Source: Octopus sinensis (lineage: Eukaryota). Taken from it: a DNA stretch of 64,000 bases. The stretch lies in NCBI RefSeq assembly GCF_006345805.1, contig NC_043023.1, positions 16,306,001-16,370,000 of the forward strand, read 5' to 3'. Below, piece by piece: positions 12,011 through 51,217 of the stretch. The notes below the pieces were generated by a model, which was not told the origin of the DNA, did not search any database, and saw only the letters and a list, made by a program, of their open reading frames with translations. How positions within the stretch are numbered: position 1 is the first letter of the stretch; the number at the start of each line of letters is the position of its first letter. Made by a program: the position numbers and the translations under genes.

Positions 12011-12049
12011 TTTTAAAACACACACACACACCCGAATACAGGCACTCTC

Positions 12050-12388: not shown

Positions 12389-13394
12389 GTAGAGAAATGC
12401 CGAAGGATCGCCCTTATTTTGATGCAAAATTTGTAAACTTTTCTGTTGACAAATATTTTCTTTTCTCTCAGATGTACAGGCTCACACACACACACACACA
12501 GAGTCCTTTATCAAACCATCCAACCCATGCCAGCATGGAAAGTAGATGTTAAAAGATGATGATGATGTATAATGGTTTTTTGTTTTGACAAGTTGTGGTG
12601 CACCTGAGCACTGTATACAATAATTCCATTATTATTATTGTTGTTCTTGTTGTTGTTATTATTTTGCTGGAGTTTTTTTCCCTCGGTGAAAAGCTTAATA
12701 GGGGTGCGGGTGAAATTTCTGAGGTTTCCACCTCACCCCACCCCGATTTCGGGACTCGAAAAAGGATTTTATAGCATATTAGGAGATCATAGGAATTCAT
12801 AGAAAATGTTGTTCCGATTCAAACCGAAAAGATTCGTTTAATATTTCGAATTACATAATCTTTTACGGAGATACCCAAATCTTTTAAGAGCTTAGGGCCT
12901 CGACGGCCCTGCCCAACATTGGAATTTAAAAACACTTACCCGAGAACAAGTATTGCAGTAACGACGACGTAGCATCTGCTGTCGAAGACTAAAAAGGATG
13001 CAAAGTTCTCCACCAATAGAATTAAACACTGCAGCTTCGACGGTTGGGATGTGAGAGCGAGGGGGTACTATGTTCAAAAATAAACATCATTAGGTCTCGT
13101 ACGACACTCGTATACATACTTATTATACATACGGACCCATACAAGCCTATACATATATACAGAGGTGGGCACGGTTAATCTAAAAGTTAAATTGGCGATG
13201 TTTCGCTTCGCCGTTAACTTCGTTAATTCTTTGAAAATTCAACGAAGGTTACCGTTAAGGTTTATTGAACAAGAGGCATACCTACAGTTTAATACCCCAC
13301 CGACTTTGTTGCATCAAAACCGCCAGAAAAACAGATACTTTTTAACGAAACTTTTACCAAATAATCGCTTATGCCCTGTAGATTGAGCATATAC

Positions 13395-13875
13395 TCTCTT
13401 TACTCTTTTACTTGTTTCAATCATTTGACTGCGGCCATGCTGGAGCACCGCCTTTAATCAAGCAACTCGACCCCGGGACTTATTCTTTTGTAAGCCCAGT
13501 ACTTATTCTATCGGTGTCTTTTGCCGAACCGCTAGGTAACGGGGACAGAAACACACCAGCATCAGTTGTCAAGCGATGTTGGTGGTGGTGGTGGGGGGGG
13601 GGGGACAAACACAGACACACAAACATACATATATACGACGGGCTTCTTTCAGTTTCCGTCTACCAAATCCACTCACAAGGCTTTGGTCGGCCCGAGGCTA
13701 TAGCAGAAGACACTTGCCCAAGGTGCCACGCAGTGGGACTGAACCCTGAACCATGTGGTTGGTAAGCAAGCTACTTACCACACAGCCACTCCTGCACCTA
13801 TCTGAAGATTTTTTGAGAAAAAGAAATTCTTTCAATAATAAATCTCTGAACGAAATTTCTTTCGTTTTCAAAACA

Positions 13876-13940
<65 letters not shown>

Positions 13941-14105
13941 GGCGTAGGAGTGGCTGTGTGGTAAGTAGCTTGCTTACCAACCACATGGTTCCGGGTTCAG
14001 TCCCACTGCGTGGCACCTTGGGCAAGTGTCTTCTACTATAGCCTCAGGCCGACCAAAGCCTTGTGAGTGGATTTGGTAGACGGAAACTGATAGAAGCCCG
14101 TCGTG
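13395..14105. mobile_element. Head-to-head inverted SINE pair separated by ~(AAT)21
   Basis: Minus copy 13395-13797, plus copy from 13940. The paralog at 43645-44320 has a shorter (AAT)n. Confidence 0.85.
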
Positions 14106-14129
14106 TGTGTATATATATATATATAGGGG

Positions 14130-14400
14130 GAAGCTTTATGAAAATAAACAAAAGACGAAGGCAGGTGGAAAACAAACGAACAATTGTATTAGTATGGCGC
14201 TCAGGAAATATAAATAAAACAAGTCTTTAACGTTTCGAGCCTACGCTCTTCAACAGAAAGATACACAGAGAGAGAAAAACACAGAAAGAAGGAGAGAAAA
14301 AAAATGCGTGCAGTAGCTAACCAATCAACAAGGCGATCTGATTTCGGCCAGAGGTCAAAGATCAAACATGAGACGCGAGAGCGAAATAAGGGGAGATAAT
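14130..14400 (-). mobile_element. Penelope-like fragment with a minimal hammerhead-like motif (14225-14262)
   Basis: Minus strand reads TCTTT-CTGTTGA-AGAGcgtaggCTC-GAAA-CGTT-AAAGA. Paralog at 44463-44500; related copy with CTGACGA at 55974-56010. Confidence 0.55.
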
Positions 14401-14439
14401 AGGGTTGATAAACGGGTTGAGGGACCAGCTAAAAGTGCG

Positions 14440-15110
14440 TGGGAGGGGTCTGGATGTGTGTATGTATAGGGTTGGTGTATGTATTAGTATGTATAAGGGT
14501 GTGTGTGTGTGTGTGTATGAGAGAGTATTAGTGCGTAAGATTGGTCTGGACGTGCGTATGTATGGGGTTGGTGTATGTATTAGTATGTATTAGTATGTAT
14601 TAGTACGTATTGGTATGTATAGGTGTGTGTGTGTGTGTGTGAGAGAGTATAAGTGCGTATGCGGGGTCTGGACGTGTGTATGTATAGGGTTGGTGTAAGT
14701 ATTAGTATGTACTAGTATGTATTAGTACGTATTAGTATGTATTAGTTGGTGTGTGTATTAGTATGGCACATCATATGTGATGTGATGTGTAAAGTCATGT
14801 GGTGTAGTGAGGAGAGAGGGGAGGGGAGGGGGAGAAGAGGGGGAGGGGGAGAAGAGGGGGAGAGAAGGGGAGGGGAAGAAGAGGGGGAGGAGAAGGGGGA
14901 AGAGGAGACGATGGGGGAGAAGGAAGGTGAGGAGGGGGATGAAGGAGGAAAGAGGGAGAGAGAGAAGGGGAGAGAGGGAGGGAGAAAGAGGGAAGAAGGG
15001 AAGGGGAGTAGGGGTGAAAGGATGAAGGACTGAAGAAGTAGGGGTCGGGGGGAGAAAGGATAGGTGAGGAGGGGGGTTAGATGAGGAGGGGGGGAGAGTT
15101 GAGACCAAAT
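14440..15110. repeat. Low-complexity tract: (GT)n/TATG/TTAGTATG repeats then a polypurine G/A run
   Basis: Direct inspection. Paralog at 44690-45340. The E/G/R-rich and P/S/L-rich ORFs are artefacts. Confidence 0.9.
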
Positions 15111-15720
15111 GGCGTATAAGAGCGAAGAGAGAAGATTAATTCCTGTTCACGGCGCAAACGGGAATCCGGATGGCCTCTGTATATATATATATATATGTAT
15201 GTGCGTGTGTGTTTGTGTGTCTGTGTTTGTCCCCCTAGCATTGTGTGTTTATCTCCCCGTTACTTAGCGGTTCGGCAAAAAAACCCCGATAGAATAAGTA
15301 CTGGGCTTACAAAGAATAAGTCCCGGGGTCGAGTTGCTCGATTAAAGGCGGTGCTCCAGCATGGCCGCAGTCAAATGACTGAAACAAGTACAGAGTAATA
15401 ATAATAATAAATTGGCATTCCATCACTATAACTCGACAAAATTTGACATTTGATTTCGGGTATTTCCGTGATAATTGCTGAAATGGGAGGACGAGAAGAA
15501 GGCTAATTGGGTTGTGTGTGCGTGCTTGTTCTCGTTTGTGTGTGTGCGTGTCTGTTCTGCTTTTATGTATACATAATTATATATAAAGATATAAGCATCT
15601 ACTGTTAGCCATTATCGTGGCAAACGATACTTAATCAAATACCAGTATTAAATGTTTGAACTACTGTGGGTCTTTACTAGGGTTTTTCTTTTATAAGCGA
15701 GACTTAAACATGTACATTAA

Positions 15721-16235
15721 TCTATATATATAAAACTGTAGTTGTGTGAGTGTCTGTCCCCTTCGATTTAGATTCCTAACTACTCCCACATTTTGCGGTG
15801 CAGTTTAACCAAATTCGGCTATCTTATAGTCGTGATTAATATCGAGCCCGTCTGAGTATTAGCGCGCGTCTACGATGAGTCTACGATTTTAAAAATAATT
15901 TAACATCATTTTTTATTCCATTTTAATGCATATTTTTTCGTGTGTCGATGGCGGCGGAGTTGGCGTCCATGGTCACACCTGCACCTGTGTTTGCTTCTCC
16001 CCCTTCTTCCCTCCCTCGTGAAGCTGTGGGGAAGGGAGTGTAAGGAAATCAACGTCGTAAAGCGTTGTCAAGGAGACCAGCGTTCTTTTAGAACAACGAC
16101 TTCATGGCTTGAAAACACCAAAACAGAAATGGCTAAGAAAGCCCGAATTGGCATCTATAAGGGAAGTAACTCTCTAAAAATGCTTATATAGTTATTTCCC
16201 TTACAAACCCGAGCAACGCCGGGCGATACTGCTAG
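15721..16235 (+). mobile_element. Non-autonomous Helitron flanked by a 143-bp direct duplication
   Basis: 5' A|TCTATATATATAAA; 3' CCCGAGCAACGCCGGG..CTAG|T. 15578-15720 is repeated at 16238-16380. Paralog at 45954-46468. Confidence 0.85.
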
Positions 16236-16975
16236 TATATATATAAAGATATAAGCATCTACTGTTAGCCATTATCGTGGCAAACGATACTTAATCAAAT
16301 ACCAGTATTAAATGTTTGAACTACTGTGGGTCTTTTCTAGGGTTTTTCTTTTATAAGCGAGACTTAAACATGTACATTAATCTCTAATAAACCATTTTAT
16401 ACATTACACGCCCATAAAATGCCTCGTAGATCTTATTCAGCTATGTTTAAACTTTGCTGAAGAGCATGGTAGAAAATTTGATGTGGACGAAAACAATGTT
16501 CAGGTTAGGGAGAAGAAATAAAGCTGAAATGAAACAGATGCCAAAGATAAAGAAGGCAAGAAGGGGGGGGAAAAGCCAAACATCCTGAACTTGAAAAAGA
16601 TTTGCGGATCTTTTCTTTTTGAACGGCATTTGCACATAATTTCTAGGTAACTAAAAAGTTTTAAACTTCGTATACTGAAAAAACTGCTGTTCAAACCGAA
16701 AAGATCCCGATTGCCTATTTATGACAAAACATTTGACAATAAAACTTTGTAAGAGTTTTGTTTAATGTTCATATCTAGACCCGGAACTGAAAATCCAAAA
16801 AATAGAAAAAATATTCGAATAGGTGTAAAACAATGTGTAGGCAACGAACAGGGGGGAAAATGCGCGTAAAGCAACAGGAGGGTGGGGTGAGGACTTGGAA
16901 AAAATCACAAGATCCGAGTTTTTCTCTAAGCTTTTAGGAAATTGGGTTTTTTCAATGAAATTTTATAGAAATACC

Positions 16976-18150
16976 GGATCTTTTCGCTTTGACCGGCAGT
17001 TTTTTAAAATAATTTCCACGTAACTGAACACTTTTAAACTTCGTATACTGGTAGAATGTGTTTATAAAACATCTTTTTCTCTTGGCTTTATTGAGAAAAT
17101 TCTATAGTTTGTAAGATATTTGGGATTTTTTCGGTTTGACCGGCAGTTTTTTAAAATAATTTCCATGTAACTAAACACTTTTAAACTTCGTAAACTGGTA
17201 GAATATGTTTATAAAACATCTTTTTCTCTTGGCTTTATTGAGAAAATTCTATAGTTTGTAAGATATTTGGGATTTTTTCGGTTTGACCGGCAGTTTTTTA
17301 AAATAATTTCCACGTAACTAAACACTTTTAAACTTCGTATACTGGTAGAATGTGTTTATAAAACATCTTTTTCTCTTGGCTTTATTGAAAAAATTCTATA
17401 GTTTGTAAGATATTTGGGATCTTTTCCGTTTGACCGGCAGTTTTTTAAAATAATTTCCACGTAACTAAACACTTTTAAACTTCGTATACTGGTAGAATGT
17501 GTTTATAAAACATCTTTTTCTCTTGGCTTTATTGAGAAAATCCTATAGTTTGTAAGATATTTGGGATCTTTTCCGTTTGACCGGCAGTTTTTTAAAATAA
17601 TTTCCACGTAACTAAACACTTTTAAACTTCGTATACTGGTAGAATGTGTTTATAAAACATCTTTTTCTCTTGGCTTTATTGAAAAAATTCTATAGTTTGT
17701 AAGATATTTGGGATCTTTTCGCTTTGAACGGCAGTTTTTTAAAAATAATTTCCAAGTAACTAAACACTTTTAAACTTCGTATACTGGTAGAATGTGTTTA
17801 TAAAACATCTTTTTCTCTTGGTTTTATTGAGAAAATTCTATAGTTTGTAAGATATTTGGGATCTTTTCCGTTTGACCGGCAGTTTTTTAAAATAATTTCC
17901 ACCTAACTAAACACTTTTTAAACTTCCTATACTGGTAGAATGTGTTTATAAAACATCTTTTTCTCTTGGCTTTATTGAGAAAATTCTATAGTTTGTAAGA
18001 TATTTGGGATCTTTTCCGTTTGACCGGCAGTTTTTTAAAATAATTTCCACGTAACTAAACACTTTTAAACTTCGTATACTGGTAGAATGTGTTTATAAAA
18101 CATCTTTTTCTCTTGGCTTTATTGAGAAAATTCTATAGTTTGTAAGATAT
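16976..18150. repeat. 147-bp tandem array, 8 units, within a foldback-type element
   Basis: GTAAGATATTT recurs at 17111, 17258, 17405, 17552, 17699, 17846, 17995 and 18142. Confidence 0.92.
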
Positions 18151-18664
18151 TTGTTGTTTTTTCCTTCAATTTCTGCAATTTCAACCAATCAATGACGTTT
18201 CTTGAGGTGAAAACATTCTCTGCCGTATGAATATGCCCCTCGTTTAAGAAACAGATTGGGTTTATTAACATTTCTGAAGAAATAAGATACCTTCCCCGCA
18301 CCCCTAACCCTAACCCTAGAGCAGATTGAAATGCAATAGATCGATACTAGGGTCATAATTATGGGTGACATTTTGATATCACACTGCTAGAAAAAAATCC
18401 CATTTTCTGTAGCGGTTTCTTCATTAAAAGAAGAATTTCCTGAAGGCCATGAACAATATTGATACAGTCACTCTTCTCTATGATGAGAAATATATCTGTA
18501 GTTAATTGTCTTTTTTCAGAGAAGGATATACCACAGAATCAGTTACATGGTTTCTCTTCCATATCAATGTGTGTCTGTGTTTATCTAAGAGATTTATTTG
18601 AGAGAACCATTCACCACAGATATCACAATGACATGGTTTCTCTAATTTCCACGTAACTAAACAG

Positions 18665-19340
18665 CCAGGGATACAGGCATCCAGCAACAGGACCTCCGTA
18701 ATGCTATGATGGATCGTGAAGTCTGGCGTAGCATGGTAAATTCCATTGTCTCTACCACGGTCGCGATACCAGAGGGCGCACCCTCTCCTACCCTAACGTA
18801 ATCTCCAGGGATACAGGCATCCAGCAACACGACCTCCGTAATGCTATGATGGACCGTGAAGTCTGGCGTAGCATAGTAAATTCTATTGTCTCAACCACGG
18901 TTGTGATACCAGAGGGCACACACTCTCCTACCCTAATGTAATCTCCAGGGATACAGGCATCCAGCAACAGGACCTCCGTAATGCTATGATGGACCGTGAA
19001 GTCTGGCGTAGCATAGTAAATTCTATTGTCTCAACCACGGTTGTGATACCAGAGGGCACACACTCTCCTACCCTAATGTAATCTCCAGGGATACAGGCAT
19101 CCAGCAACAGGACCTCCGTAATGCTATGATGGACCGTGAAGTCTGGCGTAGCATAGTAAATTCCATTGTCTCGAACACGGTCACGATACCAGAGGGCGCA
19201 CACTCTCCTACCCTGATGTAATCTCCAGGGATACAGGCATCCAGCAACAGGACTTCCGTAATGCTATGATGGACCGTGAAGTCTGGCGTAGCATGGTAAA
19301 TTCCATTGTCTTGACCACGGTCAAACAATGATGATGATGA
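18665..19340 (+). mobile_element. Five tandem copies of the terminal 140 bp of an RTE-clade LINE
   Basis: CCAGGGATACAGG recurs at 18665, 18805, 18945, 19085 and 19225. The unit translates DTRGRTLSYPDVISRDTGIQQQDLRNAMMDREVWRSMVNSIVSTTV (RTE C-terminal RGR..DR..WR pattern). Only the last copy has an (ATG)n tail. Paralog at 48605-49280. Confidence 0.85.
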
Positions 19341-19391
19341 TATCTAATTCTCTCCCAATTTTACCATTTGTCTGTCGTAGTTCACTGTGGT

Positions 19392-19772
19392 GGAAGCACT
19401 CCATCGGTTACGACGTCGAGGGTTCCGGTTGATCCAATCAACGGAACAGCCTGCTTGTGAAATTAACGTGTAAGTGGCTGAGCACTCCACAGACACGTGC
19501 ACCCTTAAGGTAGTTCTCGGGGATATTCAGCGTGACACAGAGAGTGACAAGGCCGGCCCTTTGAAATACAGGTGCAACAGAAACAGGAAGTAAGAGTGAG
19601 AGAAAGTTGTGGTGAAAGAATACAGCAGGGATCACCACCATCCCTGCCGGAACCTCGTGGAGCTTTTAGGTGTTTTCGCTCAATAAACACTCACAACGCC
19701 CGGTCTGGGAATCGAAACTGCGATCCTACGACCGTGAGTCCGCTGCCCTAACCACTGGGTCATTGCACCTCC
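19392..19772 (-). mobile_element. tRNA-derived SINE, third family
   Basis: Minus-strand head GGAGGTGCAATGACCCAGTGGTTAG (A box) ... GTTTCGATTCCC (B box). Paralog at ~49332-49712. Confidence 0.8.
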
Positions 19773-20898
19773 ACAGTTCGCTGTGAACCTGAAAGGAAAG
19801 ATTTTGCACCTTTTATGGCATTCACAACCATCCAATAACACAAAAAAACGTTGGACACTTGACAATAATTTATAATTTTAAGCAAGAAATAATCAGCGTT
19901 TCAGATATAAAAATAAATAAACAATTATACAGAAAAGGAAATAAAATCGCAAAAGGTCCTTGACTTGCTTAAAGAAAACAACTTCCAGGCCAGATTCCCG
20001 AAGCAGTAGGAATTGTGGGGCCAGTGTACAAATCCTAAACCAAAAGAAACACAAACAGGAGGTGCAGCAAGTACCCTTATAGGGATCACCGAACGCATTC
20101 TGTAAGGCGAGGCGCCAACAATGGTAAGAACTTCACTGTGGCAAATGTCACAGGTGGAAGAAATGGGTCACACTTCATTTCCTATGCTTAAGGATTTTGT
20201 TCTCGTTGGCTACGGAAGCAGTGACCCTTTGATTATAATTGAAGATATTTATGCTAAAGCAATGGGTATACATATGCAAATGTACCCCACCGACTTTGTT
20301 TCTTCATAACTTCTGGAAAAATGGGTATTTTTAAATGAAAATTTTGAGAAATACCTTTAAGAAAGTGTAGATTGCAATTATATTGGAATAGCACACGTTG
20401 GTGGGACACCACACACACACATCACACATCATCTCATTCTTTTGCATTCTAAGATTCAGTCAAAATTTTCAAATTTGGAATATTCATGTAATTTTCCATG
20501 CTGAATCTGCTACCGCTCACTTTTTCTGGACATAATTTTTTAAAAAGTGGACCTTTTCTGTTTGTGTTTTTCCCTTCAGCTCCTTCGGTTTCAAATTTAT
20601 TGATTTCAAGTTTAGTGTATTGATGTAGTTTTGTCTGTTAATTATATAAATGAAATTAGTTGTTGTCCTAAATTGATAAATATACAGTTAATAGCTTTTA
20701 AGATTTTTAAATTCCCAGTAAAAGACGGAGCAGAGTTTTGGAAAAAATATTGCTAAAATATGGATATAATTTATTTAAAAAACCAACGATGCCAATGCAG
20801 TCAGTGAAAGTCTTAATCTGATAAATAGAATTATTTTTTTCTTTTAGAGGATAAATATAGATAAAAAAACACAAATTGTAGCGTTCTTATACAAATGT

Positions 20899-21032
20899 TT
20901 ATTTCTTAAAATATTTGCAGCAGAAGAAAGAGTGTCCGACAAGGATTATAGCAAGGCTGAGTATGCCAAGAATGATTCCGACAATCTCGAGTGTTCTGAG
21001 GGGTCTTGATCCATTAGGTTCAGGTTACGGAT
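20899..21032 (-). pseudogene. Gene A terminal exon: (N)P-stop followed by a vestigial stalk/transmembrane/cytoplasmic reading frame
   Basis: Acceptor ttgtcaactgcag|AT CCG TAA CCT GAA.. continues in frame as PEPNGSRPLRTLEIVGIILGILSLAIILVGHSFFCCKYFKK*. AATAAA overlaps the final stop. Confidence 0.75.
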
Positions 21033-23268
21033 CTGCAGTTGACAAACAATAAAATATATACCTTTTGTTTTTAACAAAAAATAGTAATATCTCCCAAGTT
21101 TGACCATTTTCATACTAAACTATTAAAAAATACTTTCGTTTCTGTTATACAAATTCCATTTCAAAGTGATCTAAAGGAAAAGTCCCCATCAAAATTTCCA
21201 GTAACACTATGTTGCACACATAAGCTTGGTTATATAAAGCCTTGTGAGTGGATTTGGTAGACGGATACTGAAGGAAGCCCGTTGTATATATGTATATATA
21301 ATGTATATATATATGTGTGTTTGTGTGTCTGTTTGTCCCCCTAGCATTGCTTGACAACTGATGCTGGGGTGTCTATGTCCCCATCACTTAGCAGTTCAGC
21401 AAGAGAACCGATAGAATAAGTACTAGGCTTACAAAGAATAAATCCTGGGATCGATTTGATCGACAAAAGGCGGTGCTCCAGCATGGCCACAGTCAAATGA
21501 CTGAAACAAGTAAAAAGAGAAAGAGAAAGAGAATATAACCCGCCCCCCCCACACACACCTTGGTATTGACCCCCTCATCCTTTGCCCTTGTGGCAAATAA
21601 AAGAAACCCTTATTATATACAACTATCAGCTGAGTCCATTGTGAAGATGGCCCCTCTACTTTCCCTCAACCAGGAAGGGCAACCAGTTTTTATCTGCTCG
21701 GGGCCCATGGCAAAGGGGATCATACAGTGGACATGTCTGAAAGGGCTGAAGACCAGCAACTGCCATTTTGTCAAAACCCTAATAAACTTTTTCAGGTTTC
21801 ACTTGAAGAGGAAAATCAGGGTGGAGAGGTAAGTACTGGCTTCCAAGCAGTTTGTTGAAAGGTGAGTGAGAGAGGTGAGCATTACCTGAGTGAATGGGCC
21901 TTCTCTTTCAGAGTGTACCTGTATATTGGAGAGGAAAGACTGGGAGAGAGTATCCACCCTGGTGGTCAGGGAGACCTTGGATTTTGTGGGCTTTCTTTAC
22001 GTGTGGCCCTTGAAAGTCCCCCCACTATCAGGGATCTTACTTTGACTTTCTTTTATTCTTTGTATGACTTTTTACATGCTAAAACCCACACTGGACCCTC
22101 CCGAATGTTTTGCTTTGTGTTAGCCCTCTGTGGTTAATAAAGAAATTATTATAAATCATTTCCTTACTCTTTATCTTCAAATCAATTCTTCCAACTTTAA
22201 GGTTGTCGTCTTCAAATCTCCAAGTCAAACATTCCTTAGTTACGTTTTTGATCCAAAGCTTGGAGATACTTGCTATCTGTGTCACTTTATAGTCAGGGCC
22301 ATCAGCGCATGTCCTGTCACATTCATATCTATTATCCTGGCAAATCCAAGCCACCGGTCGTTTCATGTTTGGTACATATATCTCAAGGTTGAGATCTCTA
22401 TAGAGCTCAGCAGTTCCTGAAATAAAGAAATCAAGTTTGCTTCCAAATCATATGGTCCTGGGTTCAGTCCCACTACACAGCACCTTGGGAAAGTGTCTTC
22501 TACTACAGCATCAGCCTTGTGAGTGGATTTTCAAGATGGAAATTGAAAGAAGCCCATTCTATGTATAATTGTGTGTATGTGTGTGTATATATATATATAC
22601 ATACACACTTGTGTCTTTCAAAGCCTTGTGAGTGTATTTGATAGATGGAAACTGAAAGAAGCCCATTGTTTATATATATGTAAATAGAAAATTATTATTT
22701 CTAAGTCTCTGAATGAGAAACATTCAGTAACATTACTCGAGAGTAAAGATTATTTGCCAACATAATATGGCAGTCCTAGTTAGGGTGATTGTTACTGCTA
22801 TTTAGCCCTAGGAAACACTGCCTCCAGCTGCGTATATGACACATTATCTATGTCCTATGGGATGCTAAACTCCCTTGTTTGAAAATATAAGGATGCAGCT
22901 AGTGCGTCATATAGCCAGCTGGAGGCGATGTTTCCTAGGGCTAAGGAACAGTAACAATCGTCCTAACCAGGACTGCAATATTATGTTGGCAAATAATCTC
23001 TACCCTAGAGTACTGTTACTCAATGTCTTTTGTTCAGAGATTTAGAAATAATTTTCTATTTGTTAGATCAGAGACTTTGTGTCACTTTGGAAAGTATATA
23101 TTTTGGACAAGAGTTTAGTGGAGTCATCTCTAGCCGAGCAGTTATTCGGTGCTGATGAAGGGAAATAACCCAGAGACCATTGGTATGCAGATAGTGTGCT
23201 GTATAACCAGCTGGAGATGATGTTTCCTGAGACAACTGCCACATTATGTTGGCAAATAATCTTTACTT

Positions 23269-23303
<35 letters not shown>

Positions 23304-23712
23304 GAGTTCAGCAAAAATTTAGATTCAAGTGAAAATGTTACTTAATTTAGATGCACCAGAATTTTGTATGGTGTTATCCTTAGAAATCCGTGGGGTGATT
23401 ATAATGAAAATAAGCAACAAGAATTACTCCGGTAATTTGGTACGATCGTTTCGTACTACATCATTTTATTAAATGTTGTAAGTATTACAACAGTTTTAAA
23501 ATACTGAGCACTCATCAGCCAATTATAGAGGTTTTCCATTAATACAAAAATGTTCAAGTTAAGTGGCAACATATAGAGAAGAAAGCCTCTATAATTGGCT
23601 GATGAGTACTCAGCATCTTAAATCTGTTGTAATACTTACAGCATTTAATAAAGTGATGTAGTACGAAACGATCGTACCAAATTACCGGAGTCATTCTTGT
23701 TGCTTATTTTGA

Positions 23713-23776
<64 letters not shown>

Positions 23777-26700
23777 GTATATATATGTATATATATATAT
23801 ATATTAAGTGCAGGGCATCACTGGCAAGTTATAAATATATAAACACACAAGAGATAAGCAAGGGACAAAATAACAAAATACTTAACACCCAGTCATAATA
23901 TTGTAAGAGGCAGCTTCTACCTGGCCGGAATCCATGCTAGGTATCAGTCAGCAAGTAATTTTCTTCATGGAACATGATTAGTTTCTTGCAGACTATTCAT
24001 TCCATGACTTTGCTGAAATGTGAGGTCAGAGAGACAGGCCTATAATTTTTAGCACCTGCCCTGCTTCCTCCTTTATGAATACAGCATATTATTCCTTCTT
24101 TCAGTTTGTCTGGGAGCTTACCAATTAAAAGAAGCTGCAGTGGCATTAGGAAGGGCATCCAGCTGTAGAAACACTGCCAGATCAGAGGGCCCTGGTGCAG
24201 CCTCCTGGCTTCCCAGACCCCGGTCGAACCGTCCAACCCGTGCTAGCATGGAAAGCGGACGTTAAACGATGATGATGATGATGAAATAGCAGTAGAAATG
24301 TTTCATCCATTATTTTCTAAGATAGGGCAGGAAGAAAATGTGCCTAATGATTGGAAAGAGGGATTCATTGTGAAATTGCCAAAAAAAGGAGATTTAAGCT
24401 TTTGCGGAAATTATAAACGGATTATGCTATTATCAGCTCCGGAAAAGATTTTAACAGAATACTTTTAGAGATGATGAGGACAGCAGTTTACAAATTGTTG
24501 TGTAAAGAAGAAGCTGGATTTAGGAAGAGATCAAATCGCCACTCTTTGTATCATCGTAGAGCAAAGCGCAGAGTGGAATGCACCGATTTATTGAATTCGA
24601 AAAAGCATTCGATAGTGTAGATAGGGAAGGCTTATTGAAAATTATGCAGCACTATGGCATACCAGACAAGTACATATCTATAATAAGAGCAACTTACCAA
24701 GGAATGTCATGCCGAGTCTTGCAAGGAAACGGAGCTACGGATAAATTCGATATAAAAACAGGAGTTCGACAGGGCTGTATACTTTCTCCCGTTTTATTTC
24801 TATTAGTCATAGATTGGATTATGAAGGAAACTACGATTGAAAGCCAAACAAGCATTGAATGGACGGATGTGGAAGCTGTAGAAGATCTCGACTTTGCAGA
24901 TGATATAGCGCTACTTTCACAAACGTAACCAAATGCAAAATAAAATGTCAAAATTAGAAGCAATAGCTGCCAAACTAGGATTGAAAGTCAACCTCAAATC
25001 AAAAATTATGCACGTTTATGAAGTAAACATTGAATGTATTCAACTAGAAACTGGTGAACTAGAGGATGTAGCCGAGTTTATGTATTCAGGTAGTAAGATA
25101 ACGTTTTCAGGTGGCACCGACGAAGATATTAAGGTGAGAATAAGTAAGGCAAGGACCGTTTTTCACCTGTTAAAGAAAGTATGGAGCGCAAGTGTAATTT
25201 CAATAAACAACAAAGTAACCTCTCGGAAGAGATGTTCTTCACTCCTGCTCCAGAGCATCGGCTGCGGGGTCACTCCGAAAAGCTCTATCTGTGACGATTT
25301 CATCTCAGTCGAAGGAGAGGGGCCTTCTCTGTCCGGGTTGCGGTTCCGTGGAATAAGCTGCCGGACGAGATAATGAAGATGCCAACGACTGCTCGGTTCA
25401 AAGTCTCCATTGACCACAAATGGCCTGAACTCTTTGCATGAACACCACCCTGTACATAACTCCATGTTCCCCTACATGGCCTTGCTTTTTGCTTTTTGAC
25501 CCCAAAAATTAACTTAACATAACTTAAGTTAAGAATTTTTAACACTAACGTAAAAGCAGTGTTATTGTATGGGGCTGAGACATGGCAAACAACAGTCAAG
25601 TCAAATAAGCAAATACAACTATTCATCAACAGATGCTTGCGTAGTATACTTAAAATTAGATGGCCCAAACACATAAGCAATATGGAGCTATGGCAAAGAG
25701 CAAATCAAGTTTCGATTAGGGAGCAAATATTTAAGAAAAGGAGGAAGTGGATTGGTAGCACAATTAGAAAAGACACACTAAATGTAGTGAAAAGTGCTTT
25801 AAAGTGGAAACCGGTTGGATATAGAAAGAAAGGTAGGCCTAAGAACTCGTGGCATAGATCAACACAAAAGGAACTAGAGAAAGGGGGACATTTATGGCAG
25901 AGTATAAGTACAGAGGCGAAATATTATGCAACATGGAATTCAATTATGAGTGGCCTATACTCCACGTTGGAGGGTCAAAGGTAGGAAAGAAGAATATATT
26001 TACCACTTTGGTAGATCTCATAAATGCTATCACTTGAGAAACCTGTAAAAGATGAAAAAAAAAACTTTGGTTTTTAAGATGAAATATTTCAAAACAATGT
26101 GAATAAATGAACATTATATTTCACAGTAATTTGATTGCTAAATGATTAAAGCAGCAATATCTGTTTTATGTTCTAAGTGGCCGGGTCCAGCCCCTCACAC
26201 CTACCCAACAATGTCAGTCTAAAAATAAACAATCACATCAGCAAAATGTCAAAACTACAAAATAAGGAATGATTAATTCAAAAACCAAGACTAAATGAGC
26301 ATTACATTAAACGGAATAAACTGATTGCTAACGAGTTAAAGTAGCCATACCTGGCACAAAGATTCTACCTGTTTCGTGTTTAAACTGGTAATGGGTCATC
26401 CTTTTACACCTGTCTTACAATGTCATTCTAAAAATGAACAGACAAGGACTGCTATGCAAAGAAGTGCTGATCTCTAACTGTGGAGGCAATCTGTGGAAGA
26501 GGTGGACCCTGGAAGGTGCAGGACAAAACGGTGGAACATGAGGGCTTTGGATGTTGAGGCTGACATGTATTGATAAGTGACTGCGATTTCTGGGGATTTG
26601 CTCTTCTACAGAAGATATGTCAAGCTAATGGAAATCAAGGATGTGGCCAGTGTCGGTAATTAGTAAAAGGCACCTGTGCCAGTGACGTGTAATTTATAAA

Positions 26701-29700
26701 TCTTTCATCAAAACTTTATTGAGAATTTTCAAAATGTGCTCCATCGGCACAATGGAAATTTCAAATGTATCTGTAGACTTGTGAAACACATTTGGAAGTA
26801 TTTGAGGAGTTTATCTTCTGCACTGCTAACTGAATGCATTCTTTAAGTTCAGCTAAAAGATTGCTCCATCTGGGGCATTGTGGTAAAGAAATTAATTGCA
26901 ATCGTATTGAAAAAAGCTGTCATGGACAGATAAGGAATGAAAATAAAATTATAAACAAAATTAAAAATTTAATCACTTAACATATATTAAATATGTGAAG
27001 CAGAGGCAAAAAGTACCTTTAAAAAAAAAGGGTCCATTTTCACTGAAATAGATAATTAATTCTGGGACTGTCTGTATTGAAAACACTTAGCCCCACTCCA
27101 ATGACCCTACACTCTGAAATCTTTACCAAGAACAAAGTCCATGGGGTAAAGAGTGGCTATAAGGGGAATCCAGGTGGGCAGATATGGAGATAATGATGTA
27201 AATAAACAAATAAAACTGAGTGGGTAAGATATACATCCATGCGTACACGTTAATAGAGAGGAAGCAAAGACTGAAAAATTTCAGACGGAGAATATTCAAG
27301 CATCAGAAATCTGAATTAAATATTAACAGAGCAAACTTACACAGACTAGAAAGGCACAGAAAATCAAAGGGAAGAATGTATGGTGTTACAGCTCCTTTCT
27401 TGGCAATCGGGGTTACTTCATCTTTGGTAGATGTACCATCCATACTCACAAATAGGTCTCGCTTTTTTTCACCAAAAATTTAGATAAAAATCAGGGGCAC
27501 AACCTATCCAATAGATATTACAGGGATCTGAAGTGGTGTATCGGTAGTCCATGGCATACCCTGGACCTGGGCTTTTCAGTTTTAAAATTGTTATGGAAAC
27601 TTTTCTGCAATGTTTACTAGAAAGCAGAAACTGGAAGTTTGGTATTTGGTATTTTTTTGACATCCAGTCACCCCAATCTTTAGTTTAAAAATTTTAATAA
27701 TTGCAAACCCTACTTACAAAGTTATAGTAAGAGTTATCAATAGGCACAGAAGTGGCTGTGTGGTAAGTAGCTTGCTTACGAACCACATGGTTCCGGGTTC
27801 AGTCTCACTGTGTGGCATGTTGGGCAAGTGTCTTTTACTATAGCCTCGGGCCGACCAAAGCCTTGTGAGTGGATTTGGTAGACAGAAACTGAAAGAAGCC
27901 CGTCGTATATATGTATATATATATATGTGTGTTTGTGTGTCTGTTTGTCCTCCAAATATCGCTTGACAACTGATGCTGGTGTGTCTACGTCCCTATTACT
28001 TAGCAGTTCGGCAAAAGAGAACCGATAGAATAAGTACTAGGCTTACAAAGAATAAATCCTAGAGTCGATTTGATCGACAAAAGGCGGTGCTCCAGCATGG
28101 CCACAGTCAAATGACTGAAACAAGTAAAAAGAGAAAGAGAATATAACCCCACCCACACACACACCTTGGTATTGACCCCCTCATCCTTTGCCCTTGTGGC
28201 AAATAAAAGAAACCCTTATTATATACAACTATCAGCTGAGTCCATTGTGAAGATGGCCCCTCTACTTTCCCTCAACCAGGAAGGGCAACCAGTTTTTATC
28301 TGCTCGGGCCCCATGGCAAAGGGGATCATACGGTGGACATGTCTGAAAGGGCTGAAGACCAGCAACTGCCATTTTGTCAAAACCCTAATAAACTTTTTCA
28401 GGTTTCACTTGAAGAGCAAAATCAGGGTGGAGAGGTAAGTGCTGGCTTCCAAGCAGTTTGTTGAAAGGTGGGTGAGAGAGGTGAGCATTACCTGAGTGAA
28501 TGGGCCTTCTCTCAGAGTGTACCTGTATATTGGAGAGGAAAGACTGGGAGAGGGCATCCACCCTCGTGGTCAGGGAGACCATGGATTTTGTGGGCTTTCT
28601 TTACGTGTAGCCCTTGAAAGTGCCCCCACTATCAGGGGTTTTACTTTGACTTTCTTTTATTCTTTGTATGACTTTTTACATGCTAAAACCCACGCTGGAC
28701 CCTCCCGAATGTTTTCCTTTGTGTTAGCCCTCTGTGGTTAATAAAGAAATTATTATAAATCATTTCCTTACTCTTTATCTCCAAATTAATTTTTCCAACA
28801 TTAAGGTTGTCATCATCAAATTTCCAAGTTGAACATTCCTTAGTTACTTTTTTGATCCAAAGCGTGGAGGTATTTCCATCCTGTGTCACTTTATAGTCAG
28901 GGCCATCAGGGCATGTCTTGTCACATTCATATTTATAATTGTCGCACTTCCAAACCACCGGTCGTTTCATATCAGGTATTGTTATCGAAAGGGTGAGACA
29001 TCCATTGAGCACAGCAATTCCTGAAATAATGAAATCAGTTAAGAAGTTTGCTTCCAAATCATATGGTCCCGGGTTCAGTCCCACTACACTGCACCTTCGG
29101 AAAGTGTCTTCTACTACAGCCTGTGTGGATTTGCTAGATGGAAACTGAAAGAAGCCCATTGTATGTATCTGTGTGTGTGTGTATGTATATGTGTGTGTGT
29201 ATATATGTATATACATACACACTTGTGTGTTTCAAAGCCTTGTGAGTGTATTTGATAGATGGAAACTGAAAGAAGCCCTTTGTTTATATATATGTATATA
29301 TATATGTAAATAGAAAATTATTATTTCTAAGTCACTGAATGAGAAACATTCAGTAACATTACTCGAGAGTAAGGATTATTTGCCAACATAATATGGCAGT
29401 CCTAGTTAGGATGATTGTTACTGTTATCTAGCCCTAGGAAACACTGCCTCCAGCTGGGTATATGACACATTATCTATGTCCTATGGGATGCTAAACTTCC
29501 TTGTTTGAAAATATAAGGATGCAGCTAGTGTGTCATATAGCCAGCTGGAGACGATGTTTCCTAGGGCTAAGGAACAGTAACAATCGTCCAGACCAGGACT
29601 GCCACATTATGTTGGCAAATAATCTTTACCCTAGAGTACTGTTACTCAATGTCTTTTGTTCAGAGATTTAGAAATAATTTTCTATTTTTTAGATCAGTGA

Positions 29701-32700
29701 CTGTGTGTCACTTTGAAAAGTATATATTTTGGACAAGAGTTTAATGGAGTCATCTCAAGCCGAGCAGTTATTCTGTGCTGATGAAGGGAAATAACACAGA
29801 GACCATTGGTATGCAGATAGTGTGCTGTATAACCAGCTGGAGATGATGTTTCCTGAGACTAAATAACAGTACCATTCGTCCTAACCAGGACTGCCACATT
29901 ATGTTGGCAAATAATCTTTATTTTATATATATATATATATATATATGTATACACACAAAATAAGAAAATGGAGGAATAGATTCCTTTCAATCATCAACTT
30001 CCAGATAATACCAATTCATATAATTTATTAACTAATTATTTAGATTTAATAGGACAGGGCTGTATACTTTCTCCCGTTTTATTTCTATTAGTCATAGATT
30101 GGATCATGAAGGAAACTACGATTGAAAGCCAAACAAGCATTGAATGGACGGATGTGGAAGCTGTAGAAGATCTCGACTTTGCAGATGATATAGCGCTACT
30201 TTCACAAACGTAACCAAATGCAAAATAAAATGTCAAAATTAGAAGCAATAGCTGCCAAACTAGGATTGAAAGTCAACCTCAAATCAAAAATTATGCACGT
30301 TTATGAAGTAAACATTGAATGTATTAAACTAGAAACTGGTGAACTAGAGGATGTAGCCGAGTTTATGTATTCAGGTAGTAAGATAACGTTTTCAGGTGGC
30401 ACCGACGAAGATATTAAGGTGAGAATAAGTAAGGCAAGGACCGTTTTTCACCTGTTAAAGAAAGTATGGAGCGCAAGTGTAATTTCAATAAAGAACAAAA
30501 TAACCTCTCGAAAGAGCTGTTCTTCACTCCTGCTCCAGAGCGTCGGCTGCGGGGTCACTCCGAAAAGCTCTATCTGTGACGATTTCATCTCAATCGAAGG
30601 AGAGGGGCCTTCTCTGTCCGGGTTGCGATTCCGTGGAATAAGCTGCCGGACGAGATAGTGAAGATGCCGACGACCGCTCGATTCAAAGTCTCCCTTGACC
30701 ACAAATGGCCTGAACTCTTTGCATGAACACCACCCTGTACATAACTCCATGTTCCCCTACATGGCCTTTTGCTGTTTGCTTTTTGAGCCCAAAAATTAAC
30801 TTAACTTAAGTTAAGAATTTTTAACACTAACGTAAAAGTGGTGTTATTGTATGGGGCTGAGACATGGCAAACAACAGTCAAGTCAAATAAGCAAATACAA
30901 TCATTCATCAACAGATGCTTGCGTAGTATACTTAAAATTAGATGGCCCCAACACATACGCAATATGGAGCTATGGCAATGAACAAATCAAGTTTTGATTA
31001 GGGAGCAAATATTTAAGAAAAGGAGGAAGTGGATTGGTAGCACAATTAGAAAAGACACACTAAATGTAGTGAAAAGTGCTTTAAAGTGGAAACCGGTTGG
31101 ATATAGAAAGAAAGGTAGGCCTAAGAACTCGTGGCATAGATCAACACAAAAGGAACTAGAGAAAGGAGGACATTCATGGCAGAGTATAAGTACAGAGGCG
31201 AAATATTATGCAACATGGAATTCAATTATGAGTGGCCTATACTCCACGTTGGAGGGTCAAATGTAGGAAACAAGAATATATTTACCACTTTGGGTGATCT
31301 TGTAAATGTTTGCACTTGAGAAACCTGTAAAATATGAAAACAAAAATTTTTGATTTTAAGATGAAATAATTCAAAACAATGTGAATAAATGAACACTATA
31401 TTTCACAGTAATTTGATTGCTAAATGATTAAACCAGCAATATCCGTTTTATGTTCTAAGTGGCCGGGTCCAGCCCCTCACACCTACCCTACAATGTCAGT
31501 CTAAAAATAAACAATCACATCAGCAAAATGTCAAAACTACAAAATAAAGAATGATTAATTCAAAAACCAAGACTAAATGAGCACTACATTAAACGAAATA
31601 AACTGATTGCTAACGAGTTAAAGTAGCCATACCTGGCACAAAGATTCTACCTGTTTCGTGTTTAAACTGGTAATGGGTCAGCCTTTTACACCTGTCTTAC
31701 AATGTCATTCTAAAAATGAACGGACAAGGACTGCTATGTAAAGAAGTGCTGATCTCTAACTGTGGAGGCAATCTGTGGAAGAGGTGGACCCTGGAAGGTG
31801 CAGGACAAAACGGTGGAACATGAGGGCTTTGGATGTTGAGGCTGACATGTATTGATAAGTGACTGCGATTTCTGGGGATTTGCTCTTCTACAGAAGATAT
31901 GTCAAGCTAATGGAAATCAAGGATGTGGCCAGTATCGGTAATTAGTAAAAGGCACCTGTGCCAGTGACGTGTAATTTATAAATCTTTCCTCAAAACTTTA
32001 TTGAGAATTTTCAAAATGTGCTCCATCGGCACAATGGAAATTTCAAATGTATCTGTAGACTTGTGAAACACATTTGGAAGTATTTGAGGAGTTTATCTTC
32101 TGCACTGCTAACTGAATGCATTCTTTAAGTTCAGCTAAAAGATTGCTCCATCTGGGGCATTGTGGTAAAGAAATTAATTGCAATCGTATTGAAAAAAGCT
32201 GTCATGGACAGATAAGGAATGAAAATAAAATTATAAACAAAATTAAAAATTTAATCACTTAACATATATTAAATATGTGAAGCAGAGACAAAAAGGGTCT
32301 TTAAAAAAAAAGGTCCAATTTCACTGAAATAGATAATTAATTCTGGGACAGTCTGTATTGAAAACACTTAGCCCTACTCAAATGACCTTACACTCTGAAA
32401 TCTTTACCAAGAACAAAGTCCATGGGGTAAAGAGTGGCTATAAGGGGAATCCAGGTGGGCAGATATGGAGATAACGATGTAAATAAACAAATAAAACTGA
32501 GTGGGTTAGATATACATCCATGCGTACACGTTAATAGAGAGGAAGCAAAGACTGAAAAATTTCAGATGGAGAATATTCAAGCATCAGATATCTGAATTAA
32601 ATATTAACAGAGCAAACTTACACAGACTAGAAAGGCACAGAAAATCAAAGGGAAGAATGTATGGTGTTACAGCTCCTTTCTTGGGGATTGGGCTTATTTC

Positions 32701-35700
32701 ATTGTTGGTAGATGTACCATCCATACTCACAAATAGGTCTCACTTTTTTTTCACCAAAAATTTAGATAAAAATCAGGGGTACAAACTATCCAATAGATAT
32801 CACAGGGATCTGAAGTGGTGCATCGGAGGTCCATGGCATACCCTGGACCTGGGCTTTTCAGTTTTAAAATTGTTATGGAAACTTTTCTGCAATGTTTACT
32901 AGAAAGCAGAAACTGGAAGTTTGGTATTTGGTATTTTTTTGACATCCAGTCACCCCAATCTTTAGTTTAAAAATTTTGATAATTGCAAACCCTACTTACA
33001 AAGTTATAGTAAGAGTTATCAATAGGCGCAGAAGTGGCTGTGTGGTAAGTAGCTTGCTTACGAACCACATGGTTCCGGGTTCAGTCTCACTGTGTGGCAT
33101 GTTGGGCAAGTGTCTTCTACTATAGCCTTGGGCCGACCAAAGCCTTGTGAGTGGATTTGGTAGACAGAAACTGAAAGAAGCCTGTCGTATATATGAATAT
33201 ATATATGTGTGTTTGTGTGTCTGTTTGTCCTCCAAACATCGCTTGACAACTGATGCTGGTGTGTCTATGTCCCCGTTACTTAGCAGTTCGGCAAAGGAGA
33301 ACTGATAGAATAAGTACTAGGCTTACAAGGAATAAATCCTGGGGTCGATTTGATCGACAAAACGCGGTGCTCCTGCATGGCCACAGTCAAATGACTGAAA
33401 CAAGTAAAAAGAGAAAAAGAATATAACCCCCACACACACACACCTTGGTATTGACCCCCTCATCCTTTGCCCTTGTGGCAAATAAAAGAAACCCTTATTA
33501 TATACAACTATCAGCTGAGTCCATTGTGAAGATGGCCCCTCTACTTTCCTTCAACCAGGAAGGGCAACCAGTTTTTATCTGCTCGGGCCCCATGGCAAAG
33601 GGGATCATACGGTGGACATGTCTGAAAGGGCTGAAGACCAGCAATTGCCATTTTGTCAAAACCCTAATAAACTTTTTCAGGTTTCACTTGAAGAGGAAAA
33701 TCAGGGTGGAGAGGTAAGTGCTGGCTTCCAAGCAGTTTGTTGAAAGGTGGGTGAGAGAGGTGAGCATTACCTGAGTGAATGGGCCTTCTCTCAGAGTGTA
33801 CCTGTATATTGGAGAGGAAAGACCGGGAGAGGGCATCCACCCTGGTGGTCAGGGAGACCTTGGATTTACTGGGCTTTCGTAACGCGTAGCCCTTGAAAGT
33901 GCCCCCACTATCAGGGGTTTTACTTTGACTTTCTTTTATTCTTTGTATGACTTTTTACATGCTAAAACCCACGCTGGACCCTCCCGAATGTTTTCCTTTG
34001 TGTTAGCCCTCTGTGGTTAATAAAGAAATTATTATAAATCATTTCTTACTCTTTATCTTCAAATCAATGTCTGCAGCATTAAGGTTGTCATCATCAAATT
34101 TCCAAGTCGAACATTCCTTAGTTACTTTTTTGATCCAAAGCGTGGAGGTATTTCCATCCTGTGTCACTTTATAGTCAGGGCCATCAGCGCATGTCCTGTC
34201 ACATTCATATTTATAATTGTCGCACTTCCAAACCACCGGTCGTTTCATATTAGGTATTGTTATCGAAAGGGTGAGACATCCATTGAGCACAGCAATTCCT
34301 GAAATAATGAAATCAGTTAAGAAGTTTGCTTCCAAATCATATGGTCCCGGGTTCAGTCCCACTACACTGCACCTTCGGAAAGTGTCTTCTACTACAGCCT
34401 GTGTGGATTTGCTAGATGGAAACTGAAAGAAGCCCATTGTATGTATCTGTGTGTGTGTGTATGTATATGTGTGTGTGTATATATGTATATACATACACAC
34501 TTGTGTGTTTCAAAGCCTTGTGAGTGTATTTGATAGATGGAAACTGAAAGAAGCCCTTTGTTTATATATATGTATATATATATGTAAATAGAAAATTATT
34601 ATTTCTAAGTCACTGAATGAGAAACATTCAGTAACATTACTCGAGAGTAAGGATTATTTGCCAACATAATATGGCAGTCCTAGTTAGGATGATTGTTACT
34701 GTTATCTAGCCCTAGGAAACACTGCCTCCAGCTGGGTATATGACACATTATCTATGTCCTATGGGATGCTAAACTTCCTTGTTTGAAAATATAAGGATGC
34801 AGCTAGTGTGTCATATAGCCAGCTGGAGACGATGTTTCCTAGGGCTAAGGAACAGTAACAATCGTCCAGACCAGGACTGCCACATTATGTTGGCAAATAA
34901 TCTTTACCCTAGAGTACTGTTACTCAATGTCTTTTGTTCAGAGATTTAGAAATAATTTTCTATTTTTTAGATCAGTGACTGTGTGTCACTTTGAAAAGTA
35001 TATATTTTGGACAAGAGTTTAGTGGAGTCATCTCTAGCCGAGCAGTTATTCTGTGCTGATGAAGGGAAATAACACAGAGACCATTGGTATGCAGATAGTG
35101 TGCTGTATAACCAGCTGGAGATGATGTTTCCTGAGACTAAATAACAGTACCATTCGTCCTAACCAGGACTGCCACATTATGTTGGCAAATAATCTTTATT
35201 TTATATATATATATATATATATATATGTATACACACAAAATAAGAAAATGGAGGAATAGATTCCTTTCAATCATCAACTTCCAGATAATACCAATTCATA
35301 TAATTTATTAACTAATTATTTAGATTTAATAGGACAGGGCTGTATACTTTCTCCCGTTTTATTTCTATTAGTCATAGATTGGATCATGAAGGAAACTACG
35401 ATTGAAAGCCAAACAAGCATTGAATGGACGGATGTGGAAGCTGTAGAAGATCTCGACTTTGCAGATGATATAGCGCTACTTTCACAAACGTAACCAAATG
35501 CAAAATAAAATGTCAAAATTAGAAGCAATAGCTGCCAAACTAGGATTGAAAGTCAACCTCAAATCAAAAATTATGCACGTTAATGAAGTAAACATTGAAT
35601 GTATTAAACTAGAAACTGGTGAACTAGAGGATGTAGCCAAGTTTATGTATTCAGGTAGTAAGATAACGTTTTCAGGTGTCACCGACGAAGATATTAAGGT

Positions 35701-44119: not shown

Positions 44120-44154
<35 letters not shown>

Positions 44155-44319: not shown

Positions 44320-44366
<47 letters not shown>

Positions 44367-51083: not shown

Positions 51084-51217
51084 TTATTTCTTAAAATATT
51101 TGCAACAGAAGAAAGAGAGTCAGACAAGGATTGCAGCAAGGCTGAGTATGCCAAGAATGATTCCGACAATCTCGAGTGTTCTGAGGGGTCTTGATCCATT
51201 AGGTTCAGGTTACGGAT
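51084..51217 (-). pseudogene. Gene B terminal exon with vestigial TM frame (TAA at 51210-51212, additional TGA at 51120-51122)
   Basis: ttgtcaattacag|AT CCG TAA PEPNGSRPLRTLEIVGIILGILSLAAILV*LSFFCCKYFKK*. Confidence 0.75.

Follow-up and report, generated by a model that had tools for sequence, protein, structure and literature searches.

A recently duplicated immunoglobulin-like domain exon of Octopus sinensis with signs of positive selection on its exposed surface

The window analysed here, a stretch of 64,000 nucleotides of the Octopus sinensis genome (RefSeq assembly GCF_006345805.1, contig NC_043023.1, positions 16,306,001 to 16,370,000 of the forward strand), contains coding parts that are 100% identical to RefSeq proteins of LOC115225115 (chromosome record CM016885.1). 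The relevant exons of this gene in the window are all located on the minus strand. Among them is a domain exon that is present in exactly four copies by tblastn, termed c1, c2, c3 and B, of which c1 is strongly diverged at the protein level. The best reading of the sequence comparisons is probably that positive selection has acted on surface-exposed residues of a non-canonical immunoglobulin (Ig)-like domain that was duplicated recently.

An exhaustive profile search with the domain yielded 34 cluster representatives, every one annotated as "uncharacterized"; those identified belong to O. sinensis, O. vulgaris, O. bimaculoides and Argonauta hians, together with a multi-Ig protein, distantly related, from the abalone Haliotis rufescens. 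A homologue search using c1 by itself returned one match only and no c1-type domains, and a literature search for the family and its LOC identifiers retrieved no paper on these genes. In the family proteins, a signal peptide is followed by one to five 83-84-residue domains and by a transmembrane or glycosylphosphatidylinositol (GPI)-like tail: some paralogues comprise a signal peptide, a single domain and a short, hydrophobic, GPI-signal-like C-terminus (P0003, P0004), others two to five tandem domains followed by a transmembrane tail. Judged from these sequences, and with regard to the databases searched, the locus is part of an octopod-specific cluster of putative cell-surface genes. The four domain exons, their accompanying exons and the two duplications that relate them are arranged in the window as follows:

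22168..22416, minus strand: c1 domain exon, the accelerated copy; 249 nt, phase 1-1, encoding (G)TAELYRDLNLEIYVPNMKRPVAWICQDNRYECDRTCADGPDYKVTQIASISKLWIKNVTKECLTWRFEDDNLKVGRIDLKIK (from translation and splice sites)
28772..29020, minus strand: c2 domain exon (tblastn copy)
34050..34298, minus strand: c3 domain exon (tblastn copy)
52311..52559, minus strand: gene B domain exon, the comparison copy (tblastn); in isoforms X1, X9 and X10
26004..26042, minus strand: micro-exon 1, FSSDSIYEIYQS, 39 nt; linker or mature N-terminus ahead of c1, present in RefSeq isoforms
31286..31324, minus strand: micro-exon 2, FSSANIYKITQS
36566..36604, minus strand: micro-exon 3, FSSANIYKITQS
54267..54305, minus strand: micro-exon B, LSRAQKYKITQS, different again in sequence from micro-exons 1-3
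38321..38366, minus strand: coding part of exon 1 of unit A, MAKWILFCLLFVTFV, signal peptide; once per unit, outside the cassette repeat
56276..56321, minus strand: coding part of exon 1 of unit B, MAKWILFCLLFVTFD, matching the N-terminus of isoform X10
20899..21032, minus strand: tail exon of unit A, transmembrane-like segment, with an in-frame TAA at codon 3 (NP, then stop)
51120..51217, minus strand: tail exon of unit B, with an in-frame TAA at codon 3 as in unit A
12653..22586 and 42901-52736: segmental duplicate, 94-98% identity, pairing tail region and c1 with tail region and B; the neutral yardstick for c1 versus B
24768..38292: tandem 5.28-kb cassette repeat (24768-33014 = 30053-38292, 97.9% identity), three copies, each unit with a micro-exon and a domain exon

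Segments of LOC115225115 isoforms match the residues encoded by all four domain exons with 100% identity, and the splice sites of c1 are intact (acceptor cag/GAACTG at 22416, donor AAAGA/gtaagg at 22168 on the minus strand). Since both the domain exon and the 39-nt linker micro-exon that precedes it are in phase 1-1, duplicated exon pairs can splice in series. This is what the RefSeq models, at least 18 isoforms, predict: X1 and X3 read D0-B-c3-c2-c1-TM; X10 opens with unit B's own exon 1 and holds B, c3, c2 and c1; X8, X9, X11 and X12 omit one exon, X8, X11 and X12 holding c3, c2 and c1; and X2, X4 and X5 lack c1 and run on into the next unit. In most of the listed isoforms c1 is included, usually as the last domain before the membrane. 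The copies, named cassettes in the first-pass annotation of this stretch, are not alternatives in the predicted models, which carry B, c3, c2 and c1 in one polypeptide; according to these models, the "cassettes" are tandem domains with optional skipping. Mutually exclusive splicing of the Dscam1 type was likewise rejected, the predicted isoforms stringing duplicated exons in series with occasional skipping.

At the protein level, c1 and gene B differ at 29 of 83 residues (39 of 249 nt, 84.5% identity), which confirms the earlier manual count, as well as the statement that c1 contains no stop, frameshift or indel. The quoted codon changes of more than one nucleotide are likewise present (codon 12, TCG>GAG; codon 14, ACA>TAT; codon 25, AAG>ATT), and differences do fall at positions 4, 6, 8, 10, 12, 14, 51 and 53, with L5, L9, L11, I13, L54 and I56 invariant; the remaining ones are located at 2, 7, 15, 23, 25, 27-30, 41, 47-50, 58, 62, 64, 67, 74, 75 and 79. 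All four Cys (26, 33, 37, 63) are kept, as had been noted; instead of the two Trp mentioned alongside them there are three invariant ones (24, 55, 66), also all kept. The c1-specific clusters are AELYRDLNLEIY and AWICQDNRY.

The surrounding non-coding DNA is indeed far more similar than the exon. Between c1 and B, the 84.5% identity of the exon compares with 97.6% over 873 nt of the downstream intron and ~96% in the 154 alignable columns of the upstream intron; between c1 and c2 or c3, identity is 83-84% in the exon and 95-96% in the flanks, and between c2 and c3 it is 96.0% in the exon versus 99.8% in the upstream intron. The suggestion that equally diverged introns might reveal cassette 1 as simply older is thus not borne out. 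When all four copies are aligned, c1 alone is substituted at 26 of 249 positions in the exon, 9 of 893 in the downstream intron and 5 of 154 in the upstream intron (exon versus pooled introns, 14/1047: Fisher p = 1.4e-10). These changes span exon nt 9-220; the nearest 123 nt of upstream and 55 nt of downstream intron are free of them. Against a crude parsimony "ancestor" the count for c1 rises to 39, because of 13 ambiguous sites, and the strict c1-unique counts were used instead. The sliding-window comparison of exon and introns proposed earlier places the exon's two 100-nt windows as the most diverged of the whole 5.3-kb cassette, with 22 and 13 differences per window; most intron windows have 0-5 and a few 6-10. 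Divergence is also raised in the 100-nt window that contains the 39-nt micro-exon, although an intron window shortly upstream of the domain exon matches it. Of the 39 nt of micro-exon 1, six are unlike those of micro-exons 2 and 3, and five of these changes are non-synonymous, which indicates that the linker was remodelled along with the c1 domain. Hard-wired A-to-I editing sites were rejected as a source of the differences, only ~4 of the 26 c1-unique changes being A>G in the codon table.

At the codons where c2, c3 and B agree, c1 has ~22 non-synonymous changes versus one that is clearly synonymous (codon 70), plus at most one further synonymous change on a multi-step codon path. The synonymous rate on the c1 branch is thereby ~0.03, close to the intron rate of 0.010-0.013, and the replacement rate is ~0.11, roughly eight times higher. 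Pairwise ratios of non-synonymous to synonymous divergence (dN/dS, NG86) are 1.6-2.4 for c1 versus each copy, 2.4 for c2 versus c3 and 0.8-0.95 for c2 or c3 versus B. Under maximum likelihood (GY94-F3x4), with the exon of the paralogue LOC115225458 (locus L001) added as a fifth sequence, the ratio remains above 1 despite the extra copy (one-ratio ω = 2.3-2.5, p = 0.008-0.013 against ω = 1). For the c1 branch, ω = 4.7-4.9 (p = 0.013-0.018 against ω = 1). The other copies have a background ω of ~1.8, and giving c1 a ratio of its own does not improve the fit (two-ratio versus one-ratio model, p about 0.25); the regime is therefore family-wide, and c1 stands apart in the amount of change, not in the regime. 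All of these results hold under three topologies. The diversifying selection proposed earlier stands in so far as dN exceeds dS, the core is kept and the introns are quiet; what is seen, in one haplotype per species, is divergence between paralogues.

Constraint has been retained. In the 34-domain family alignment, 20 positions are conserved at >=80%; in c1, none of these 20 is changed, as compared to 24 of the 64 other positions (Fisher 5e-4), and 39 random substitutions (the crude parsimony count) spare all 20 in simulations with a probability of only ~3e-4. Neutral decay is excluded by this sparing. An AlphaFold2 model based on the 34-sequence alignment reached a predicted local distance difference test (pLDDT) score of 91.5, with strands at 9-14, 22-26, 29-33, 43-48, 51-56, 65-69 and 75-79 that form an Ig-type beta sandwich; it supersedes an earlier run with 8 sequences (pLDDT 68, non-significant Foldseek matches). 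The top Foldseek matches in the PDB are all Ig domains of the I-set and V-type (probability 1.0, template modelling (TM) score 0.58-0.76), the best being titin M1 (E = 2.8e-4), twitchin Ig26, neurotrimin and NCAM2 Ig1 (TM score 0.66-0.76). Sequence-based detection is much fainter: Pfam searches with single domains gave no family even at E <= 10; the five-domain isoform P0067 reached 28.2 bits for I-set (PF07679) when summed (cut-off 23.7), no individual stretch passing; and a PDB profile search yielded only titin (E = 0.07).

According to the model, the c1 domain is an I-set-like immunoglobulin sandwich without the canonical disulfide. The Trp of strand C is present (W24, 97% conserved), and the B-F intersheet disulfide is missing, strand B (LNLEIY or LTLSIT) having no Cys and strand F reading T-W-x-F. 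Cys residues are instead located at 26, 33, 37 and 63, of which C33 and C37 (ECDRTC) are near-invariant; C26 and C63 are apparently lost together in the members inspected, which suggests disulfide pairs 26-63 and 33-37. At domain position 8, B has an N-L-T glycosylation sequon, whereas c2 and c3 have an additional, fifth Cys without a partner (GCLTL).

Along strands B, C, E and F, core residues and changed residues follow one another in alternation. When the strands are assigned to sheets by standard I-set topology and by alternation with the conserved core, ~15 of the 24 c1-unique residues fall on the A-B-E-D side (10, 12 and 14 in strand B; 2, 4, 6-8 and 15 in the A-B segment; 48-50 at the end of D and in the D-E turn; 51 and 53 in strand E). 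The other nine are distributed over the opposite sheet and loops (23 and 25 in strand C; 27-30 in the C-C' turn and C'; 64 and 67 in F; 74 in the F-G loop). The earlier notion of a single remodelled sheet face thus captures the larger part of the changes in the AlphaFold model and misses the rest; as modelled, they are found at every second, predictedly exposed position in both sheets as well as in loops, and "one face" is over-simplified. The remodelled strand-B face of c1 is rich in Glu, Tyr, Asp and Arg. Copy c1 has lost both the N8-L-T sequon seen in B and the N50-T-S sequon shared by c2 and c3, and has N58-V-T.

An orthologous array is found in O. vulgaris (CAI9743596/7, assembly GCA_951406725.2), ending in GTAELYRDLNLVIYIPHMKRPVAWICQDNRYECDRTCADGPDYKVTHFGDTSKLWIKNVTKECLTWRFEDDNLKVGRIDLKIK, ahead of which stands FSSDSIYKIYQS. 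The c1 orthologue in CAI9743596, carrying GTAELYRDLNLVIYIPHMKRPVAWICQDNRYEC..., is intact and shares 19 of the 24 c1-unique states, and in the domain tree the two are placed together on a long stem; most of the change in c1 is therefore older than the O. sinensis / O. vulgaris split. The orthologues differ at eight residues (12, 15, 17 and 47-51), so that some change continued after the split. The O. vulgaris CAI9743596 model (P0074) merges a histone H2B-like N-terminus, two Ig-like units and a zinc-finger-like read-through over 116 kb. This annotation has almost certainly been over-merged and is useful only for its domain sequences.

These observations are probably best accommodated by the following sequence of events. 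Intragenic duplication generated three pairs of micro-exon and domain exon (c3, c2 and c1), and a larger duplication unit B. Subsequently, the c1 exon and its micro-exon gained ~24 amino-acid replacements at positions predicted to be solvent-exposed, while synonymous sites and introns of c1 changed at the background rate and the folding core (four Cys, three Trp and the inward-facing hydrophobics) was kept. The most likely driver is positive selection favouring a binding surface on c1 that is new or still shifting; this domain is membrane-proximal in most RefSeq models. A weaker version of the same regime acts on the paralogues, which looks like birth-and-death evolution of a recognition-type cell-surface family. 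The data support the view that the excess in c1 is adaptive-looking protein change and not a consequence of age or decay, and we infer that the changed surface is a binding surface.

Several points weigh against positive selection as the explanation. (i) The likelihood tests involve five sequences of 83 codons, a self-written implementation (not PAML or HyPhy) and possible recombination, and the c1 branch was picked post hoc; because it was chosen as foreground for looking odd, p-values near 0.015 are optimistic. (ii) Pairwise dS between c1 and the other copies is 0.09-0.12, i.e., 2-4 times the intron divergence, and part of the exon divergence may therefore be older or conversion-derived. (iii) The c1 changes cluster at nt 9-41, 66-87 and 144-156, which allows for a few complex mutational events. 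(iv) Some c1 states are common in a set of 74 further domain instances, taken from four octopod species (N58 in 35/74, L64 in 41/74, and R7, K53 and R67 each in 10-13/74) and may hence be retained or converted rather than new. (v) The isoforms are Gnomon predictions, not verified transcripts.

The most serious competitor, although an unlikely one, is exon-limited gene conversion, by which the c1 exon or its three clusters would have been copied from one or more older, diverged paralogues; as only the exons would be similar enough to recombine, the introns would date the cassette and not the exon. Judged from sequence patterns, patchy conversion clearly operates in the family. Six of the eight residues that differ between c2 and c3 are concentrated in codons 75-81 (NVGKINLE in c2 at 28772-28797, NAADIDLK in c3 at 34050-34075), while the upstream intron is 99.8% identical between the two copies. 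NAADIDLK recurs in LOC115225116 and in O. vulgaris domains, so that c3 seems to carry a short gene-conversion patch at its 3' end. Similarly, residues 47-51 of the O. vulgaris c1 orthologue read HFGDT, as they do in the adjacent domain d3 of that protein; one of the two lineages may thus have acquired a conversion patch here. The clustering of the c1 changes and their ending inside the exon, the frequency of N58 and L64 in paralogues and the occurrence of T2, R7, K53 and R67 in 8-13 of 74 instances would also be in line with copying. On the other side, no donor is apparent among the 74 instances, nor was one for the c1-specific clusters seen in the annotated proteins and 94 kb of DNA searched; two c1 states are absent from the family and about a dozen others occur in <=3/74. 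A donor under ordinary constraint would moreover have brought many synonymous differences, whereas the c1 branch has 1-2, about the intron rate, and a donor differing by replacements only would merely shift positive selection to the donor lineage.

Less probable still is an old exon within homogenised introns, where concerted evolution would have erased intron divergence and selection kept the exon distinct. The pairwise dS of 0.09-0.12, which exceeds the intron divergence of 0.024-0.05, points in this direction, as do the proneness of a tandem array to unequal exchange and the age of the c1 type, which is at least that of the O. sinensis / O. vulgaris split. Homogenising tracts would have to stop at the exon on both sides, however, both versus B and versus c2/c3; synonymous change unique to c1 (1-2 in ~51 sites) matches the c1-unique intron rate of 1.0-1.3%; and an intron divergence of 2.4-5% is not near zero and plausibly predates a recent species split. 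Selection would in any case still be needed to hold the exon different. Part of the pattern may be due to exon-limited conversion, with an unseen paralogue as source, or to homogenisation of the introns, and even then selection on the protein is required.

Relaxed constraint, with c1 decaying or rarely used and drifting neutrally, is very improbable. The next downstream tail exon has an in-frame stop in both units, and isoforms X2, X4 and X5 leave c1 out, but neutral drift cannot outpace introns, and replacement sites evolve ~8 times faster. The open reading frame and both splice sites are intact, as is the O. vulgaris orthologue, the conserved positions are untouched (p = 5e-4) and c1 is part of most listed isoforms; decay as a pseudo-exon was likewise rejected. 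An assembly or collapse artefact creating a chimeric exon, conceivable in a repeat-rich, tandemly duplicated region, can hardly be maintained in view of the identical c1 in RefSeq models, the close orthologue in the independent O. vulgaris assembly and changes that respect codon structure and fold.

Apart from the domain exons, the window (G+C 31-44%) is abundant in satellites and elements resembling short interspersed elements (SINEs). Arrays of a 147-bp satellite occur in both orientations at four places (2950-3533, 16976-18164, 47211-48104, 62432-63166), and the same unit is present in an intron of LOC115225458. Arrays of 140 bp are located in the tail-side introns (18665-19323, 48605-49263) and arrays of 254 bp immediately upstream of exon 1 of each unit (40099-40834, 56524-57507). 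GC skew is strongly positive (0.41-0.43) at 14001-16000 and 44001-46000, in both copies of the segmental duplication, and coincides with GT-rich 122-bp tandem repeats (14477-14756, 44715-45001). A stretch of ~1.4 kb at 23296-24768, in the intron between micro-exon 1 and c1, is found only in the c1 cassette, and owing to it the spacing of c1 and c2 is 6.6 kb rather than 5.28 kb; it is probably a transposable-element insertion. A dispersed SINE-like repeat of ~400 bp (80-93% identity, both orientations), of which locus L001 holds many copies, is found at cassette junctions and might have mediated the cassette duplications:

4075-4471, 7145-7541, 12046-12389, 13390-13801, 27740-28145, 33022-33425, 38679-39097, 43641-44045 and others: copies of the ~400-bp repeat

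The tail exons were located by a scan for hydrophobic C-termini; tblastn and blastn with the tails of O. sinensis paralogues did not find the tail exon. Both read cag/AT CCG TAA, and an intact in-frame transmembrane-like segment follows the stop (PEPNGSRPLRTLEIVGIILGILSLA...). In the O. vulgaris orthologue of unit B, Lys takes the place of the stop (NPKPE..., P0013). RefSeq isoform X6 (P0064) terminates at this TAA (...IKNP) and is a putative secreted form; other isoforms bypass the TAA tail exon, taking their tail from the next unit.

Parallels can be drawn to several known systems. The vertebrate KIR/LILR, CEACAM/PSG and SIRP families share with the octopus genes (i) the tandem arrangement and strings of Ig-like domains encoded by one phase 1-1 exon each, (ii) replacements of exposed residues in particular domains amid similar introns and (iii) birth-and-death evolution with conversion patches, as well as membrane-anchored and truncated or secreted forms, the latter being predicted in the octopus. 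The octopus domain differs from them in its compactness (83 residues), the lack of a B-F disulfide, its CxxxC motif and second Cys pair, the absence of a single-domain Pfam match and its confinement to octopods in the databases searched. Arthropod Dscam1 and mollusc FREPs similarly have internally duplicated Ig-domain exons and many isoforms per locus; Dscam1 arrays are mutually exclusive, an exon encoding half or one Ig domain within a fixed architecture, in contrast to the serial inclusion in the octopus RefSeq isoforms, and somatic diversification, as reported for FREPs, has no counterpart in the octopus genes and predicted isoforms analysed. IgLON, NCAM, titin I-set and Thy-1-like GPI-anchored Ig proteins are akin to the family as best structural matches and through its single-domain, GPI-like paralogues; sequence identity to IgLON, NCAM and titin I-set domains is only 13-20%, and their canonical Cys pair is missing in the octopus domain. 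A link to the squid Thy-1-like glycoprotein Sgp1 is conceivable; a literature search on Sgp1 gave nothing relevant. Octopus clustered protocadherins, whose expansion is reportedly described in the O. bimaculoides genome paper, resemble the present genes as a lineage-specific tandem expansion of adhesion- or recognition-type cell-surface genes in one chromosome region; they differ in fold and architecture, with diversity arising from gene number and alternative first exons.

Fast-evolving tandem genes for cell-surface Ig-like proteins usually mark recognition, be it of pathogens, self and non-self, gametes or neuronal identity. The comparison with immune, allorecognition or gamete-recognition proteins drawn in the first-pass annotation may serve as an analogy only. 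A further-reaching and rather doubtful possibility is that the cluster constitutes an octopod-specific combinatorial recognition system, in which read-through joining of units, exon skipping, alternative signal-peptide exons and tails would act together with individual domains, such as c1, that positive selection has pushed towards new binding specificities. If so, dozens of isoforms (transmembrane, GPI-like and secreted) would make it a functional analogue of Dscam or the clustered protocadherins, built on a non-canonical Ig fold.

The molecular basis of cephalopod immunity and cell recognition is poorly understood. The locus adds an octopod-restricted, uncharacterised family showing a clean molecular signature of adaptive change, for which the introns of recent duplicates provide a built-in neutral control. 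The pairing of c1 with c2, c3 or B offers a natural set of domains in which binding by the remodelled surface may be tested.

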